Assembly (NCBI GenBank): GCA_977020255.1
Contig: CDROCS010000253.1
Span: forward strand, 62,001 to 126,000
Origin: Obrimoposthia wandeli
Lineage: Eukaryota
DNA: 64,000 nucleotides
Direction of reading: 5' to 3'
Of this stretch, positions 3,884-52,770 are shown in pieces. The notes beneath the pieces were generated by a model that saw only the letters and a program-made list of their open reading frames with translations, made no database searches and had not been told where the DNA came from. Each line of letters starts with the position of its first letter. Positions within the stretch are counted from its first letter, which is position 1. The position numbers and the translations under genes were made by a program.

Positions 3884-6520
3884 ATGACGACTGCCACAAA
3901 AGATCTTTCTTCACATACCCCTATGATGCGCCAGTACTTAACTATTAAGGCTGAATTTCCACATACTTTGATCTTTTATCGCATGGGCGATTTCTATGAG
4001 CTATTTTTTGACGATGCCAAAAAAGCCTCTGACTTATTAGATATTTCACTTACCGCTCGAGGTAAAACCGGTGGTAATGCTATTCCAATGGCGGGTGTGC
4101 CATATCATGCCGCTGAAAACTACTTAGCGAAGCTAGTCGCTTTAGGTGAATCAGTCGCTATTTGTGAGCAAATTGGTGATCCTGCCACCAGTAAAGGTCC
4201 AGTTGAGCGCAAAGTAGTACGTGTTATCACCCCAGGTACGGTTAGTGATGAAGCACTGCTAGCCGATAGACAAGATAATCTCATTGTTGCCATCGTCGAT
4301 AATCAATCACCGCAAGCAAAGCTAAAAACAAGCTCAGCCCCTGCCTTTGGTCTTGCTTATTTAGATATGGCCAGTGGCCGATTTGTACTAACTGAGCCAC
4401 AAACCAATGAACAACTTCAAGCTGAACTACAACGCCTATCTCCTGCTGAATTACTTTATAGTGAATCTATACAGGACTTTAGCTTAATAGAGAACAGAAA
4501 AGGTTTACGTCGTCGCCCAGAGTGGGAATTTGATCTTGATACCGCCATTAGCTTATTGAACAAGCAGTTTAACACCAAAGAGTTAACTGGCTTTGGCGTT
4601 GATGATAAACCTTTAGGCTTGGCTGCTGCCGGTTGTTTATTTCAATATGTTAAAGATACCCAACGCACTGCCCTGCCTCATATTCGCGCCATTATCTGTG
4701 AATCTGCCAATAAAGGCGTGGTACTCGATGCCGCCACTAGACGTAATTTAGAGCTAACCCAAAACTTACATGGCGGTTTAGATAATACCCTTGCCGCTAT
4801 TTTAGATAAATCATCGACGCCAATGGGATCGCGTTTACTTAAACGTTGGTTACACTTCCCCTTACGGGATTTAACGGTGCTTAATAACCGTCAAAATACG
4901 GTAAGTGATATTATCGCGTTAGATCTGATCACGCCAATTCAACCATTATTAAAAGGCTTAGGCGACATTGAACGTATTGTTTCAAGAATCGCCTTAGGCT
5001 CTGCACGACCTAGAGATTTTGCTCGTTTACGTCATGCGCTACAGCAACTGCCAGAGTTACAGGATGAATTAAAAAGTGAATTAACAGAACTCCACACTAG
5101 CGACTCAAGCACTAACTACTTAGCCACTATTGCACAGCAAAGTCAGCCAATGCCTCAACTACAAAACTTGTTAGAACATGCCATTGTTGAAAACCCACCC
5201 GTATTAATACGTGATGGCGGTGTTATCGCACCCGGTTATAATAGCGAGCTCGATGTACTGCGTGATTTAAGTGATGGTGCTACTGAATTTTTAGCACAGC
5301 TTGAGCTACGTGAAAAAGAACGAACTGGCATTCATTCTTTGAAAGTTGGCTATAACAGAGTGCATGGCTTTTTTATTGAAATGAGTCGCACCGCAGCAGT
5401 TGATGCGCCTGATGATTATATTCGTCGTCAAACATTAAAAAATAATGAACGTTTTATTACCGAAGAATTAAAGCAACATGAAGAGAAAGTACTTAGCGCT
5501 CAAAGTAAATTTTTAGCCTTAGAGAAATCACTCTATCAAGAACTATTCGACAGAGTATTGCCTGATTTAGCGCAACTGCAGCAATTAAGCCAAGCTATCG
5601 CTGAGCTCGATGTGTTAACCACCTTCGCAGAGCGTGCATTAGCGTTAAACTATGTAAAACCTAACTTAGTTGAAGAGCCGGGCATAAGCATTGATGCTGG
5701 TCGCCATGTTGTCGTTGAGCAAATGACTAATGATGCCTTTATCGCTAATCCTGTGTTGTTAACAGAGCAACGTAAAATGTTGATTATTACTGGTCCAAAT
5801 ATGGGCGGTAAATCTACCTATATGCGTCAAACAGCTTTAATCGTTCTACTTGCTCATATCGGTTGTTACGTACCTGCTGACAATGCAACGATAGGCTTAG
5901 TTGATAGAATATTTACCCGCATTGGTGCTTCCGATGACTTGGCCAGTGGCCGTTCAACCTTTATGGTCGAAATGACTGAAACTGCAAACATCTTACATAA
6001 CGCTACAGATAAAAGTTTAGTACTACTTGATGAGATTGGTCGAGGTACCAGTACCTATGATGGCTTATCACTGGCTTGGGCATGTGCAGAAATGTTAGCA
6101 CTTAAAACCAAGGCCTTTACTTTATTCGCTACCCATTACTTTGAGCTGACTATGCTTGCCGAGCAGATCCCAAGCTTAGCCAATGTTCACTTAGATGCTA
6201 TGGAACATGACGATAACATCGTCTTTATGCATGCGGTACAAGAAGGAGCGGCTAGCAAAAGTTTTGGTTTGCAAGTAGCACAATTGGCCGGCGTACCAAA
6301 AATGGTGATAAAGCGTGCTAAACAAAGATTAAGTGAGTTAGAGCAACAGCAAACTCCAACGTTACTCCCTGCAACACCTGTACAAAGTGATGCCTTTGAG
6401 CAACTTAGTTTCGCTTCAAATGAGCATCCGGCAATAACAACGCTTATTGATACCGACGTTAATGAGTTAAGCCCGAGACAGGCACTTGATTTATTGTTTG
6501 CCTTAAAAGAACAGCTGTAG
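3884..6520 (+). CDS. mutS: DNA mismatch repair protein MutS
   Basis: [54 protein letters not shown]. Confidence 0.98.
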
Positions 6521-20037: not shown

Positions 20038-20067
20038 AACACTTATTATTTGTCATAAAGAAGTCAT

Positions 20068-42823: not shown

Positions 42824-45130
42824 TTACTCGCTCGCTTTAGGCTCTTCATCAGTACTTTTCTCACCGGAACTAGTCACAGAAGCAGATTCAATTTCTATTG
42901 CTGAAACGCGCTGTAAACCTCTAGGCAGTTTATTACCACGACGACCACGTTCCCCTTTATAGTGCTCTATATCTGCCGCTTTTAGCGTAAGCTTGCGTTT
43001 ACCTGCATGAAGTGTAATTGCTGCACCTTCGGGGATTATACAAAGTAAACTAACAAACTCTTCCCGTGTTTTGGATCGTGCCGAAGGGATATTAATAATC
43101 TTATTACCTTTACCCTTACTAAGTACAGGTAAGTTTTTAACTGGAAAAACTAACATACGCCCTTCACTGGTAATAGTAAGGCAGTTATCATTTTCAATAT
43201 TTTTGATGCATTGCGGCATCATCACTTTAGCAGCTTCAGGTAAGCTAATTAATGCCTTACCGTTTTTATTTCGGCTGACCATATCTGCAAAGCTACTAAC
43301 AAAACCATAACCCGCATCACTGACTAACAGGTATTTAGCATCATCGTCAGACATTATGCTGTGAACGAAGGTTTTCCCTGTTGTAAGGTTGAAGCGTCCT
43401 GTTAATGGCTCACCTTGAGAGCGTGCCGTCGGCAACGTATGAGCGTCAGTAGTAAAAGCACGACCATCAGAGCCAATAAATACTACAGGGCGATTACTCC
43501 GCCCTTTTGATGCACATAAATAACTGTCACCGGCTTTATAACTTAAGCTAGTGGGATCAATATCATGACCTTTAGCACAACGAGCCCAACCTTTTTCAGA
43601 AACGACTACGGTTACCGACTCACTTGGTACTAAATCTTTTTCAGTGAGTGCTTTTGATTCGCTACGCTCAACTAATTTAGAGCGACGATCATCACCATAT
43701 AGCTCGGCAGCTTCAAGGATCTCTTTTTTCATCAGCGTACTCATGCGCGCTTTTGAATTGAGGATTTTTTCTAAATATTGTTGTTCAATACGTAATTCAT
43801 CTTGCTCTGCTCTAATTTTTATTTCTTCAAGCTTGGCAAGTTGACGTAGTTTAATCTCTAAAATAGAGTGAGCTTGCGTGTCTGATAAGGCAAAACGAGA
43901 CATCAGTTCTGCTTTAGGATTATCAAAGCCCCGAATAATCTCAATCACTTCATCAATATTTAAGTAAGCAACTAATAAACCATCAAGAATATGTAAACGA
44001 GCCAATACTTTATCTAAACGATATTGCAAACGACGGCGTACTGTTTCACGGCGATATTCCAGCCATTCAGATAAAATAACGAGTAAGTTTTTCACTGCAG
44101 GACGATTATCTAAACCTATCATGTTGATATTAACGCGATAGCTTTTTTCTAAATCAGTACTCGCAAACAAATGCTGCATTAACTGTTCAATATCAACACG
44201 ATTTGAACGTGGCATGATAACAAGGCGTACCGGATTTTCGTGATCAGACTCATCACGAAGATCGACTTCATATAGCTTTTTCGTAATCATTTGCCATTAT
44301 TTAGCTCTCAATGTTTTCACCCCCGAGGCTTGATGAGGCAGTGAGGTAATAACAATATCACCCTGCTCTACATCATAAACAGCACGCATTCTTATGCTAC
44401 CACGACCTGTTTGGTAAATTTTTTCAATCTCGGCTTTCGGGGTAATAATCTCAGCGTCTGTAGGATAATCAGGCCCTTTAACAAACTCGAGTAAGTCACT
44501 CACTTCTGCTTTGGGATTTTCAATTAAATGTACACAAGCATCAGCGACTTCACGCACATTGTGCGGTGGAATATCTGTTGCCATGCCCACGGCAATACCG
44601 GTAATGCCGTTCAGTAAAATATGAGGTAAACGCGCAGGTAACGTTTTTGGCTCTTGCATGGTGCCATCAAAGTTTGGCTGCCAATCAACCGTGCCTTGCC
44701 CTAATTCAGCAAGTAATACTTCACTAAAACGTGATAATCGCGACTCGGTATAACGCATTGCGGCAAACGATTTAGGATCATCGGGTGCACCCCAGTTTCC
44801 TTGGCCGTCTACTAAAGGGTAACGATAAGAAAAAGGTTGCGCCATCAACACCATAGCTTCATAACAAGCACTATCACCATGGGGATGAAACTTACCTAAT
44901 ACGTCACCAACGGTACGGGCTGATTTTTTATATTTCGCCGTTGCAGATAAACCAAGCTCTGACATTGCATAAACTATGCGTCTTTGTACGGGCTTTAAGC
45001 CATCACCAATATGTGGCAAAGCTCTATCCATAATTACATACATGGAATAGTTTAAATAAGCTTCTTCAGTAAAACGCCTTAATGGGACTTGTTCTACTCC
45101 ATCAAGGCTATATTCGAGCGCATCTGACAT
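42824..45130 (-). CDS. parC: DNA topoisomerase IV subunit A, interrupted by an in-frame TAA at 44297-44299
   Basis: [18 protein letters not shown] and AAMRYT (catalytic Tyr) in 44297-45130. [11 protein letters not shown] and the CTD in 42824-44290. Both halves are in the same frame, separated by TAA-TGG-CAA. Confidence 0.9.
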
Positions 45131-48714: not shown

Positions 48715-49965
48715 TTATGCTATTTTTCGAACAAAATAACTGGCGAGTAAAGTGAATGCCAAGGCAAAAGACATGCAGACTAACAAACCAAATTGCTGAA
48801 AAATAAGCCCTGAGAGTATAGTACCAAGCAACCTGCCCATGGCATTCGCCATATAATAAAAGCCAACATCCATGGAAACACCATCTTCTCTAGCAAGGGC
48901 AACAATAAGATAACTATGCAGTGATGAATTCATAGCAAACACAGCACCAAATATAAATAGACCGATTATCAGTACTTCGTTATTTTGTGGAAAAAGGTAG
49001 ATAGCAAAACATAAAGTCAACGTTACCAACATAAGTAATACTGACCAAACCGTTACTTGCTGATGTGGGGATTGTTCTCCACTACTGCTAATAAGTGTGA
49101 GGATTTTCGGGGCATTGGCTTGAATGATGCCATAAAAAATAATCCAACAAGCGAGAAAGGTACCTACCGCTTGATGTTGCCATTGTAATTGACTTGCCAA
49201 ATAAACAGGTAAAGCAATGACAAACCAAACATCACGACCCGCAAACAGGAACAAACGCGCTGCAGATAAATAATTTAATGATGCATTCTTTGAAAACAGC
49301 TGACTAAACTTTGCTTTATAGCGCGTTTTACCGATATCACCACGCAACATAGGGGAAGTACTTACAGCAACAATGACTAATACCATTGCCATTAATAGCA
49401 CGGCAACTTGAAAGTCAAAAGTAGTAAGTAATAAACCACCTAGAAAAAAACCAACACCTTTAAGGGTGTTTTTTGAGCCAGTGAGTAATGCCACCCAAGT
49501 GAATAGTTTACTTTGTGCCTCTTCGCTATTTACCTTCGCCACCAGTAATTTTATGCTCGACTTAGCACTCATTTTATTCAAATCTTTAGCGATACCTGAC
49601 AATGCTTGAGCAAACATGACATAAGCGACACTTAAGTATTCGCTTGGCAGCGCCAACATTAATAAGGCTAACACTTGGATAACGATGCCAATTAACATAG
49701 TTTTATTTAAACCAATACGTGCGCCAAGCCAGCCCCCGACAAGATTAGTGATAACACCAAAAACTTCATATAGAATGAATAACGTCGCTAACGCAAATGG
49801 GCTATAACCTAACTGGTAAAAATACAGCAACACCAGCATACGTAATGCGCCATCGGTCAACGTAAATGCCCAATAGTTAGCGGTGATTGCGATGTATTTT
49901 TTTACCGGCGCTGGCAAAGAACTAAATAAAGCCAAACTATAATTCGTTAATGCTGGCTTCAGCAA
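48715..49965 (-). CDS. arsJ: Organoarsenical efflux MFS transporter ArsJ
   Basis: [61 protein letters not shown]. Overlaps the GAPDH 3' end. Confidence 0.9.
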
Positions 49966-50992
49966 CAGTGCTTAAACTGTTTGCCATTAATTTCATTAAC
50001 TCAGCAGTGCGATTAGCATAACCCCACTCATTGTCATACCATAAATACATTTTCAGCTGGCTACCATTAATCACCATTGTTGATAGAGCATCAACAACAC
50101 ACGATCTGGCATCCGTTTTATAGTCAACTGACACTAAAGGTTTAATTTCATAACCCAAAATTCCGTTTAGCTCACCTTTAGCTGCATCAGACATCAGCTG
50201 GTTTATTTCTTCAACACTGACATCACGTTGCATCTCAAAAACACAATCGGTCAATGAAGCATTTGCCAGAGGCACCCTAACAGCATGACCATTTAATTTC
50301 CCTTTTAATTCAGGAAATATATCAGTGATAGCTTTAGCAGAGCCCGTAGTAGTTGGAATTAATGATTGCCCACAAGCACGTGCGCGGCGTAAATCTTTAT
50401 GTGGGGCATCTAAAATGGTTTGGGTGTTGGTAATATCATGAATGGTAGTCATACTGCCGTGCTTTATACCTACCGATTCTTGCAATACTTTAACTACTGG
50501 AGCCAAACAGTTGGTCGTACATGAAGCGGCGGTGACAATGTTATGCTCATTGACTTGGTACAAGTGCTGATTAACGCCCATAACAATATTTACTATATCG
50601 TTATCTGAGCCGTCAGCTGCTAATTTCATTGGCGCTGTAACAAGTACCTTTTGAACACCTTGGTTGAAGTAAGCTTGTAGCTTATTTTTATCGCGCATTA
50701 CGCCTGATGCTTCGATAACAAGATCGCATCCAGACCAATCTGTTTCAGCTATATCATAATTTTGGCTTACAGTTAACGTACGACCACCAATATACATTAA
50801 CTTACTTTCAGCTGTAGCCTCATGCTGCCATCGACCATGAATAGAATCAAAATTAAGTAAGTGTGCCAGAGTTGGTGCATCACCAGCAGGGTCATTAATT
50901 TGCACAAACTTCACCTCAGGCCAATGCCATGCAGCCCGTAAAATTAAACGTCCCATACGACCAAAGCCGTTTATACCTACTTTAATTGTCAT
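49937..50992 (-). CDS. ArsJ-associated glyceraldehyde-3-phosphate dehydrogenase
   Basis: [20 protein letters not shown] (catalytic Cys), [23 protein letters not shown] subfamily signature, WYDNEWGY. Confidence 0.9.
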
Positions 50993-51059
50993 TTTTTCAA
51001 CTCTTATTTTATCTATTGGTAGTGGTGATATATCGATAGTACTAATACTTTAAAACATA

Positions 51060-51084
51060 AAAATCCTCTATAAAAGAGGATTTT
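51060..51084 (-). terminator. Weak AT-rich hairpin (terminator of the HlyD operon, or 5' hairpin of the gapdh transcript)
   Basis: AAAATCCTCT-5 nt-AGAGGATTTT followed by T-rich sequence on the minus strand. Confidence 0.45.
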
Positions 51085-51092
51085 CTAAGTTA

Positions 51093-51126
51093 ACTATATT
51101 ACCTATTTATGACAACTTAATGACAA
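51093..51126 (-). promoter_or_regulatory. Pho box plus -10 hexamer (candidate PhoB-activated promoter of gapdh-arsJ)
   Basis: Minus strand TTGTCAT-TAAG-TTGTCAT-AAATAGGTAA-TATAGT: 11-bp period and exactly 10 bp to the -10 box. Confidence 0.7.
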
Positions 51127-51151: not shown

Positions 51152-52393
51152 TTAATGCCCTGAAAAAACCAGTACTTTAACCGGCAGTAACAAGGCTTGC
51201 ATGCGCAGAATTATTGCGTGAACAACCCCAACAGCATCAACCATATGCAAGTATATAGTTTCTGTAGTACTGAGTGTGCCACTAGCAAATAAGTCATGAT
51301 GATAACTGTATGCATTAGCGATACACTTTGTTCCAGGAATAACGCCATCAAGACCCCCTTCGTAAAGAGGCACTAACCTTACGGTTAGCGTACCCGGTCT
51401 TGCTCGCTCTTGAACATCTATCAAAGCCTCTGTCGTTCTCACTTGTCCAGTTGCAATAACACTTTGAACACTCGCTACTTGCATAGGTATGATGGTAAAA
51501 GGTTTAGATAAACACGTTATTTCAGCAAAAGTGCCTACTTTAATAACATTGGCCGCTAATTGATTAAAACCGGCCTGAACAGCTTCCTTTCCTGATGCCT
51601 CTCCAGAGGAAGGTACTATCATACCGGCAGAGCGAATCATCGGGTTAACAAAGTCACCTGGTTGCAATGCAAACTGCTGTAATTCGCCATCAATATGGGC
51701 ATAGATAGTACGTTTGCTTTCATCAACAATGGCGCTATTTAATACCTCAACAGCACTGGCTCTTTTCGTTGGTAAAATACTTTCGATTATCGCTTGCGCT
51801 GAAACTTCATTGGCAGTGGATGCTGATAAGCCAGCTTCATTCATCGCCACAGTATCAGCCATTTTTTGTACTTCGCTTTCACTAATAATATTGTTGCCCT
51901 TTAGCGATAACGCCTTCTTACGATCATATTCATTCTTCGAACGCATATAAGCACTATTCGCTTTTTTTACGTTACTTTTTGCTACCGCTAGTTGCGCATA
52001 GGCCGTAGTGAACTCTGCCTCAACTTGCTTTATTTGTGCTTCTGCTTGATCAATTGCCGCCAGTTGTGATTCATCATACATGCTAAAAATAGCAGTGCCC
52101 GCTTTAATTTTCTGATGATTTTTCACAAAGACATGCTCAACCCTGCCACTTTTCTCCGGCATGATAGACACAGTTCTAAACATTGGAGCAGCATTTGTCG
52201 TTGAGGGATGGTAATAAAAAATTAAGGTGACTAATGAAATCGATAAAATAACACAGGCTGATATGCCCCATCGCAGCTCATACCACATGGTAAAGAAGGT
52301 GATCTCCTTCCCCCAGGTCATACCTTGGCGATATTTTCGGAATAAATAATCCGGCAAAATGGTGATAAGTGAACAGAGTAGAACTTCTAACAT
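51152..52393 (-). CDS. HlyD-family membrane fusion protein (YibH/YiaV-like)
   Basis: MLEVLLCSLITILPDYLFR, PEKSGRVEHV, coiled coil, LQPGD. Confidence 0.75.
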   Translation of the reverse strand: MLEVLLCSLITILPDYLFRKYRQGMTWGKEITFFTMWYELRWGISACVILSISLVTLIFYYHPSTTNAAPMFRTVSIMPEKSGRVEHVFVKNHQKIKAGTAIFSMYDESQLAAIDQAEAQIKQVEAEFTTAYAQLAVAKSNVKKANSAYMRSKNEYDRKKALSLKGNNIISESEVQKMADTVAMNEAGLSASTANEVSAQAIIESILPTKRASAVEVLNSAIVDESKRTIYAHIDGELQQFALQPGDFVNPMIRSAGMIVPSSGEASGKEAVQAGFNQLAANVIKVGTFAEITCLSKPFTIIPMQVASVQSVIATGQVRTTEALIDVQERARPGTLTVRLVPLYEGGLDGVIPGTKCIANAYSYHHDLFASGTLSTTETIYLHMVDAVGVVHAIILRMQALLLPVKVLVFSGH

Positions 52394-52413: not shown

Positions 52414-52770
52414 TCACTGTGTCTTCAGTATTTTCTGTGTTTTTTGCTCTTTACTGCTAGCGATAGTCGCTAAAGACTTCGCGATAGATTTTAACGGTGT
52501 TAAGAAGTCAGGTAGTTCAACAACCGCTAACACCAAAGCAGCAACCCAAAAAATATTATTATGAGTAAATAAAGCTAAAATAGTTAATATTGTGATCAGT
52601 TGTATTTGGGTATGATTTTTCCCGTGGGCGATATGCTCAGGAATAGCATGTAATTTAAAGTATAAAACACCCGCGATTAAAACTAAAAAAACAAGAATAA
52701 CAGCCATTACGACCATTAAAGGATCACTATCAGCGCCTGCCAAATATCCCGGAATATGCTCTGTATTCAT
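52414..52770 (-). CDS. Small inner-membrane protein (YibI/YiaW, DUF3302-like)
   Basis: YFKLHAIPEHIAH motif, FWVAALVLA, directly upstream of the MFP gene. Confidence 0.6.
   Translation of the reverse strand: MNTEHIPGYLAGADSDPLMVVMAVILVFLVLIAGVLYFKLHAIPEHIAHGKNHTQIQLITILTILALFTHNNIFWVAALVLAVVELPDFLTPLKSIAKSLATIASSKEQKTQKILKTQ

Follow-up and report, generated by a model that had tools for sequence, protein, structure and literature searches.

The 64-kb stretch analysed here, hereafter the window, comprises 64,000 nucleotides (nt) of contig CDROCS010000253.1 from the Obrimoposthia wandeli assembly GCA_977020255.1. On its minus strand, it carries a gapdh-arsJ pair, which encodes a dedicated glyceraldehyde-3-phosphate dehydrogenase (GAPDH) and the efflux permease ArsJ, behind a predicted Pho-box promoter. 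Arsenate enters cells via phosphate transporters, and its risk is therefore highest under phosphate starvation, with the Pst system induced. The features of the promoter region and of the two genes are listed below in the direction of predicted transcription, with lengths in base pairs (bp), nt, or amino acids (aa).

51109-51126, minus strand: Pho box TTGTCAT-TAAG-TTGTCAT, two heptads in 11-bp phase around 4 A/T-rich bp; one PhoB dimer is predicted to bind here
51093-51098, minus strand: -10 hexamer TATAGT, 10 bp 3' of the Pho box, without a -35 element
51059-51085, minus strand: stem-loop and T-run, 11 pairs, -13.1 kcal/mol, z = -3.1
50993-51058, minus strand: 5' leader of ~65 nt from the hairpin to the gapdh ATG, poorly conserved except for the ribosome-binding region ATAAGAGTT
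49937-50992, minus strand: gapdh, ArsJ-associated glyceraldehyde-3-phosphate dehydrogenase, 351 aa (NF033735; Pfam Gp_dh_N and Gp_dh_C)
48715-49965, minus strand: arsJ, MFS efflux permease, longest open reading frame (ORF) of 416 aa (NF033734; PF07690 MFS_1)

The gene identities given in an initial annotation of the window were retained, as both products exceeded the curated NCBIfam cut-offs. The gapdh ORF scored 549.7 bits against NF033735 (ArsJ-associated GAPDH; cut-off 450), and the catalytic cysteine motif SCTTNC is kept at residue 157 of its product. The arsJ ORF scored 570.1 bits against NF033734 (ArsJ; curated equivalog cut-off 400). The same annotation described the two genes as overlapping, and the longest arsJ ORF indeed shares 29 nt with gapdh; however, close relatives begin arsJ at a TTG located one base past the gapdh stop, and their ArsJ proteins measure 406-410 aa. 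The equivalent TTG of the window, at 49935, yields a protein of 406 aa and is the likely arsJ start, so that gapdh and arsJ are probably tightly coupled without any overlap.

The PhoB signature comprises TGTCA heptads, 11-bp phasing, an A/T-rich spacer, and a distance of 10 bp to the -10 element. In the window, the minus-strand layout runs from the stop codon of an HlyD-like gene through 25 nt, the Pho box, 10 bp, TATAGT, and 7 nt to the stem-loop, within the 159-nt intergenic region that separates this HlyD/EmrA-like gene from gapdh. The initial reading of TTGTCAT-TAAG-TTGTCAT exactly 10 bp from TATAGT was reproduced at coordinates 51126-51109 and 51098-51093. The box scored 14/14 against YTGTCAY-N4-YTGTCAY, and the perfect repeat has a single match in the window. 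Additionally, the 34-nt pattern of box, spacer, and -10 element, allowing up to 2 mismatches, was matched once against 0.00 expected from 100 shuffles. A consensus scan from the upstream stop codon to the gapdh ATG detected no sigma-70 -35/-10 promoter, which is the expectation for an activator-dependent promoter. Two other candidates were discarded: the second-best Pho-like site in the window (20050-20067) overlaps a start codon and is not a promoter, and the single Rfam match in the intergenic region, a Phe-leader on the opposite strand, scored 23.9 bits against a threshold of 55.

The Escherichia coli phoA promoter, used as a query, was confirmed by a genome search, in which it was matched in 5234 of 5426 E. 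coli genomes, ~40 nt 5' of the annotated phoA. This promoter reads CTGTCATAAAGTTGTCAC, followed by 10 bp and TATAGT. As in the window, two 7-bp direct repeats separated by 4 A/T-rich bp form an 18-bp Pho box that lies exactly 10 bp 5' of TATAGT without a -35 element, and the promoter begins ~20 bp past the stop codon of the upstream gene. Whereas the phoA promoter serves a phosphate-scavenging enzyme, that of the window precedes an arsenate-efflux pair; in addition, its heptads start with T and not with C, and a terminator hairpin lies 3' of its start site. The colinearity with phoA, together with conservation in eight Colwellia lineages, upholds the Pho-box promoter architecture proposed at the outset.

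Pho-type and ArsR-type loci in Colwellia

The ArsJ relatives at 75-90% identity were all from Colwellia. The Pho-type set comprises eight lineages: the window, C. psychrerythraea L081 (also L082, L083, L095, and L097), C. demingiae L084, Colwellia sp. 12G3 L086, a second C. psychrerythraea-type strain L087, and the metagenomic L091, L092, and L093. All eight are without arsR, have intact gapdh and arsJ genes, and possess the box with fixed spacings of 4 bp and 10 bp, the -10 element, and the hairpin. The fractions of majority bases, computed over the eight lineages on an alignment anchored on the box, were as follows.

Heptad 1: 0.98; 7 of 8 identical, L093 reading ATGTCAT
A/T spacer: 0.81
Heptad 2: 0.80; G, T, and A invariant
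-10 element: 0.98; position invariant, TATAAT in L092
25 nt upstream of the box: 0.56

The substitutions within the heptads (first base T/C/G, last base T/C) fall at degenerate positions of the Pho consensus. No palindrome shared across the eight lineages was detected in the leader.

The ArsR-type set comprises five loci: Colwellia sp. MT41 L085, TT2012 L099, L100, L088, and L089. In these loci, arsR (HTH_5) lies directly 5' of gapdh and is preceded by a perfect palindrome, ATACATATG-N6-CATATGTAT. Three of them (L085, L099, and L100) share the whole synteny of the window, including the HlyD-like gene and the hairpin after it, and the arsR and operator of these sister Colwellia occupy the identical syntenic position. 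MT41 and TT2012 are trench strains.

In the GAPDH+ArsJ tree, Pho-type and ArsR-type loci were grouped in one clade (100/100), and the ArsR-bearing Colwellia hornerae and Thalassotalea were placed outside it. At least two state changes are needed on this tree, and a single origin of the Pho-type state was not rejected (p-AU 0.11). Therefore, ArsR is the ancestral state, and the Pho-box state was derived once or twice. As the sister Colwellia keep arsR and its operator at the same place where the window has neither, a swap of ArsR for PhoB appears to have taken place in one Colwellia clade.

ArsR linkage and Pho boxes at other gapdh-arsJ loci

For comparison, we used 78 usable gapdh-arsJ loci of other marine Gammaproteobacteria (L001-L080 series). 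A dedicated GAPDH was found directly 5' of ArsJ in 76 of the 78 loci, the same pairing as in the window, and in 67 of the 78 the cluster included ArsR, on its own or as an ArsC-ArsR fusion. Together with the Vibrio cholerae var operon (PMC9601151), these counts agree with the initial statement that gapdh-arsJ is normally ArsR-linked. A candidate ArsR operator, ATATAYG-N6-CRTATAT, was derived here from 65 loci and is not a published consensus. It was recovered with a score of at least 13/14 upstream of arsR or ArsC-ArsR in 43 of the 65 arsR-linked loci, distributed over many marine gammaproteobacterial genera, and three loci without arsR (L052, L056, and L059) have kept it upstream of gapdh.

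In the window, no operator site of at least 12/14 was found in the 64 kb, and the best site upstream of gapdh scored 9/14, which corresponds to background. The tblastn searches with representatives from the 78 loci gave no match to arsR, ArsC-ArsR, acr3, VarH-like, or permease sequences in the 64-kb window, and the small ORFs of the window had no HTH_5 or ArsC domain. The initial annotation had also listed arsB and arsC as missing. For arsR, ArsC-ArsR, and acr3, absence was confirmed over the whole 64 kb, whereas arsB and glutaredoxin-type arsC were covered only in part: neither was found in family scans of the small ORFs and the ten locus genes, and neither was among the tblastn queries.

In the survey of gapdh-arsJ upstream regions that had been suggested with the initial annotation, ArsR linkage was dominant, and a perfect Pho box upstream of gapdh was found in one of 79 other gammaproteobacterial loci, L055 only, so that a Pho box is not a general feature of these loci. 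At L055, a metagenome-assembled genome of Natronospirillum, pstA-pstB-phoU is followed by a perfect TTGTCAT-N4-TTGTCAT and then by gapdh-arsJ, without arsR; the spacer of this box includes two masked N, which were left unchanged. At the related L034 (Salinispirillum), pstC-pstA-pstB-phoU and a terminator are followed by TTGTCAT-ATAT-ATGTCAT (13/14), 10 bp, TATAGT, and arsR-gapdh-arsJ. The Pho box and -10 region of L034 (4488-4543) is overlapped by two ArsR operator palindromes, and this promoter looks like a candidate for dual control by PhoB and ArsR. Its mRNA may be leaderless, as no more than 7 nt separate the -10 element from the called arsR ATG. Both L055 and L034 belong to the Oceanospirillales and stand beside pst-phoU; they are independent parallels to the arrangement predicted for Colwellia.

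A pst operon adjoins the gapdh-arsJ cluster in 7 of the 78 loci. No pst genes were found near the gapdh-arsJ pair of the window, where the link would be purely regulatory. Furthermore, Pho-like sites of at least 13/14 were enriched upstream of arsR (7 versus ~0.3 expected), most of them facing divergent genes. In two Vibrio loci, the sites face a divergent pstS, with promoters harboring four phased CTGTCAC/TTGTCAT heptads. In L027, L037, L065, and L080, sites scoring 12-14/14 face away from arsR and neighbor a lysophospholipase-like hydrolase, a HAD hydrolase, or an unknown 170-aa protein.

In a metagenome scan, TGTCA-N6-TGTCA was sought 90-120 nt before a GAPDH start, and seven contigs were returned, four of them from the Colwellia clade. 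The three others were rejected as chance matches at housekeeping gapdh genes, two in a gap-pgk-tpi cluster and one, L094, at a lone non-ArsJ GAPDH.

Some further repeats were recorded beside the ars clusters. In L065 (Marinomonas), a perfect CTGTCAT-CTTT-CTGTCAT, with 10 bp and CATTAT, lies on the opposite strand upstream of arsR; the counterpart in L080 (also Marinomonas) scored 12/14, with one degenerate heptad. These sites face a divergent protein of 168-176 aa without a Pfam match, which is a candidate Pho-regulon gene beside the ars cluster. The loci L088 (~820-850) and L089 (~1200-1225) share a conserved CTGTCAC-TAG-TGTCAAT, with a 10-bp and not an 11-bp period, which adjoins a divergent xanthine/uracil permease gene upstream of arsR. 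In the arsR-less Kangiellaceae locus L006 (~4890-4925), a direct repeat CTGTTCG-N9-CTGTTCG is located just upstream of gapdh and may mark yet another regulator of the pair.

Among the systems described, the V. cholerae var operon, arsR-varG-varH-arsJ, has one promoter, which is arsenate-dependent and ArsR-repressed (PMC9601151). The var operon and the gapdh-arsJ pair of Pseudomonas aeruginosa DK2 (cited in PMC9601151) resemble the window in the dedicated GAPDH plus ArsJ permease, in the gapdh-then-arsJ order with tight coupling, and in the NCBIfam models passed. Unlike the var operon, the window is without arsR and its operator, has a Pho box at the promoter, and has no varH phosphatase gene. 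In 31 loci, a VarH counterpart was observed next to gapdh and arsJ or between them; it is a CX5R protein of 165 aa that resembles dual-specificity phosphatases (Pfam Tc-R-P, CDKN3, DSPc). These loci include L005, L007-L009, and other Vibrionaceae, as well as L012, L023, L038, L040, L043, L044, L062, L066, and L075. VarH has been described as 'rather exclusive to the Vibrionaceae' (PMC9601151); the VarH-like protein was also present beyond this family, in Colwelliaceae, Psychrosphaera, Reinekea, Marinobacter, Oleiphilaceae, and Parendozoicomonas loci.

Phosphate uptake or phosphate stress has been associated with gapdh-arsJ, physically or transcriptionally, in three further systems. In the arsenic island of Halomonas GFAJ-1, pstBACS adjoins mfs1-mfs2-gapdh (PMC5930303). 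In the Nodularia cluster arsR-sphX-gapdh-arsJ, gapdh and arsJ were upregulated at some time points of P limitation, with log2 fold changes of up to 2.4 and 1.2, respectively (PMC9846622). The P-acquisition islands of Prochlorococcus contain arsR, gap1, and mfs (PMC10504305). In contrast to the window, these loci keep ArsR or are without a defined promoter. Cyanobacteria and arsenic islands have thus already shown that P stress and arsenate detoxification are connected, which limits the gain in knowledge; no description of a Pho-box promoter on gapdh-arsJ, or of one replacing ArsR, was found in the open-access literature.

Predicted control of the pair

We consider with moderate confidence that gapdh-arsJ is transcribed from a PhoB-dependent promoter, which would place arsenate export in the phosphate-starvation regulon and not in the ArsR regulon. 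The trigger for arsenate export would then probably be a shortage of phosphate and not arsenic. Every in-silico test run supports the PhoB-promoter interpretation, and PhoB binding, low-phosphate induction, read-through of the hairpin, and physiological benefit are inferred from sequence, as is the 'pre-emptive proofreading' rationale put forward in the initial annotation. Some points weigh against PhoB control. The arrangement is rare outside the Colwellia clade (1 of 79 loci, and none further in the metagenome scan), the Pho box was calibrated on E. coli phoA and Vibrio pstS rather than on Colwellia's own Pho-regulon promoters, and no RNA runs containing the locus were found among public sequencing runs. 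Moreover, in all eight lineages the first ~35 nt of the predicted transcript include the terminator-like hairpin, which could stop much of the PhoB-driven transcription before gapdh.

In the proposed mechanism, a PhoB~P dimer would bind the two TTGTCAT heptads under phosphate limitation, substituting for the -35 element, and would recruit sigma-70 RNA polymerase to TATAGT 10 bp downstream, as at a class II-like activated promoter. Transcription would begin near 51086, read through the stem-loop at 51085-51059, and continue through the ~65-nt leader into gapdh and the coupled arsJ. Arsenate entering the cytoplasm via the induced Pst system would be turned by the dedicated GAPDH into 1-arseno-3-phosphoglycerate, and ArsJ would expel arsenate either in this form or free. 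Regarding the history of the locus, the ancestor would have had arsR and its palindromic operator between the hairpin and gapdh, as still seen in Colwellia MT41 and TT2012. The C. psychrerythraea / C. demingiae group no longer has arsR or the arsR promoter, and its predicted Pho promoter lies upstream of the old terminator.

The first base of the hairpin falls near +1/+2 of the predicted Pho transcript (near +14 in L093), and all predicted Pho transcripts therefore contain it. Its stem has only 3 G-C pairs, the sequence directly 3' of it is TTTTTATGTTTT, and its T-run counts 5 T in the window and 6-8 T in relatives. It was present in all eight Pho-type loci and in the ArsR-type L085, L099, and L100. 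The stems ATCCTC/GAGGAT (Pho-type) and GCCCTC/GAGGGC (ArsR-type) differ by two paired changes and share the same position and the same loop, a pattern by which the two hairpins are judged homologous. These paired changes were read directly from the sequences and not from the formal covariation count, which was weak on the MAFFT alignment, where loops were misaligned. The hairpin combines a stable stem-loop, an adjoining T-run, conservation, and a position 3' of a gene end, as in intrinsic terminators; it is evidently the inherited terminator of the upstream DUF3302/HlyD-like operon, kept after the loss of arsR and its promoter. The initial annotation had noted a weak hairpin just past the predicted start; its position was correct, but it is a conserved terminator rather than a chance weak stem.

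This terminator brings up an outcome that we regard as unlikely, in which PhoB does bind the Pho box and activate a genuine promoter there, with most transcripts ending at the hairpin and phosphate control being marginal. Expression of gapdh-arsJ would then be low and constitutive, supplied by read-through from the upstream operon or by a weak promoter in the leader. The leader between the hairpin and the ribosome-binding site is unconserved and without a promoter-like site, whereas the box and the -10 element are clearly constrained in eight lineages with intact gapdh and arsJ, and a promoter driving nothing would not persist. The folding energy and z-score of the hairpin and the longer T-runs of relatives do resemble those of a terminator, although the stem is poor in G-C pairs. 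Likewise, its homolog at the MT41-type loci L085, L099, and L100 precedes the arsR promoter, which is the normal order, whereas a promoter 5' of a terminator is unusual. One argument speaks for functional read-through of the hairpin, namely that the box and the -10 element are the sole conserved promoter-like elements upstream of genes intact in eight lineages. Possible roles of the hairpin are attenuation of the Pho transcript, insulation of the pair from upstream transcription, and, as a 5'-terminal stem, stabilization of the mRNA.

Direct repeats with a 10-11 bp period are bound by many winged-helix response regulators, and the calibration from E. coli and Vibrio did not include a Colwellia Pho-regulon promoter. 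Thus the repeat might be bound by a different OmpR/PhoB-family response regulator, or serve another role, with a signal other than phosphate. We regard this as improbable, since the layout is identical to that of E. coli phoA with a complete PhoB signature, the same heptads occur in Vibrio pstS promoters, and the independent cases directly adjoin pst-phoU.

Control by ArsR in trans does occur, as L052, L056, and L059 keep the operator without arsR, and L034 appears to combine PhoB with ArsR control. For the window, however, there is only a slim chance that an ArsR-family repressor encoded elsewhere controls the pair, either alone or on top of PhoB, given that no operator stands out from background in the 64 kb or upstream of gapdh and that the eight Pho-type lineages share no leader palindrome. 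Finally, a functionless chance match in A/T-rich intergenic DNA is hardly credible: although repeat matches with up to 3 mismatches are common in the window (20 found versus 11.7 expected), the 34-nt pattern had an expectation of zero and is conserved in eight lineages while the flanking DNA has diverged.

With PhoB control as the preferred interpretation, we tentatively consider a broader possibility, in which the control of arsenate efflux was rewired from toxin sensing (ArsR) to nutrient-state sensing (PhoB) as an ecological adaptation. L034 would then be a dual-control intermediate and L055 an independent end point, and the retained terminator would act as an attenuator or 5' stabilizer, insulating the pair from the upstream operon.

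If true, direct membership of the gapdh-arsJ pump in the Pho regulon would give a clear-cut example of anticipatory regulation, relevant to how marine heterotrophs handle arsenate:phosphate ratios. Moreover, one genus would show the replacement of a regulator at a single locus, with both states in cultured strains, such that C. psychrerythraea or C. demingiae can be contrasted with MT41 or TT2012. The within-genus ArsR/Pho-box swap at one syntenic site, along with the dual-control and pst-linked parallels, would make a good experimental system. For annotation, the results suggest that the lack of arsR does not by itself mark a gapdh-arsJ pair as an orphan or silent remnant.

Neighboring genes

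The minus-strand gene order in the window is cpdA, yqiA, parE, DUF3302, HlyD/EmrA-like, gapdh, arsJ, two GGDEF proteins, and parC. The pair upstream of gapdh provides context and lies outside the arsenate module.

52414-52770, minus strand: DUF3302 protein
51152-52393, minus strand: HlyD/EmrA-like adaptor

The DUF3302 plus HlyD/EmrA-like synteny is common to L081-L087, L091-L093, and L099-L100. In this Colwellia clade, the DUF3302 and HlyD/EmrA periplasmic adaptor genes always lie 5' of gapdh-arsJ, in an operon without a transporter gene of its own; L088 and L089 are without the pair. That the adaptor might partner with ArsJ, an MFS pump, is pure speculation.

An in-frame TAA at 44299-44297 on the minus strand breaks the parC gene into two ORFs, one of 277 aa and one of 488 aa. 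The stop sits in a stretch of ~20 residues (44268-44327) that is unlike all Colwellia relatives, and both flanks match the relatives. Contigs from three public runs that cover this stretch all differ from the window, by ~15 substitutions and compensating small indels; therefore, the break was attributed to a local sequence fault of the window and not to biology.

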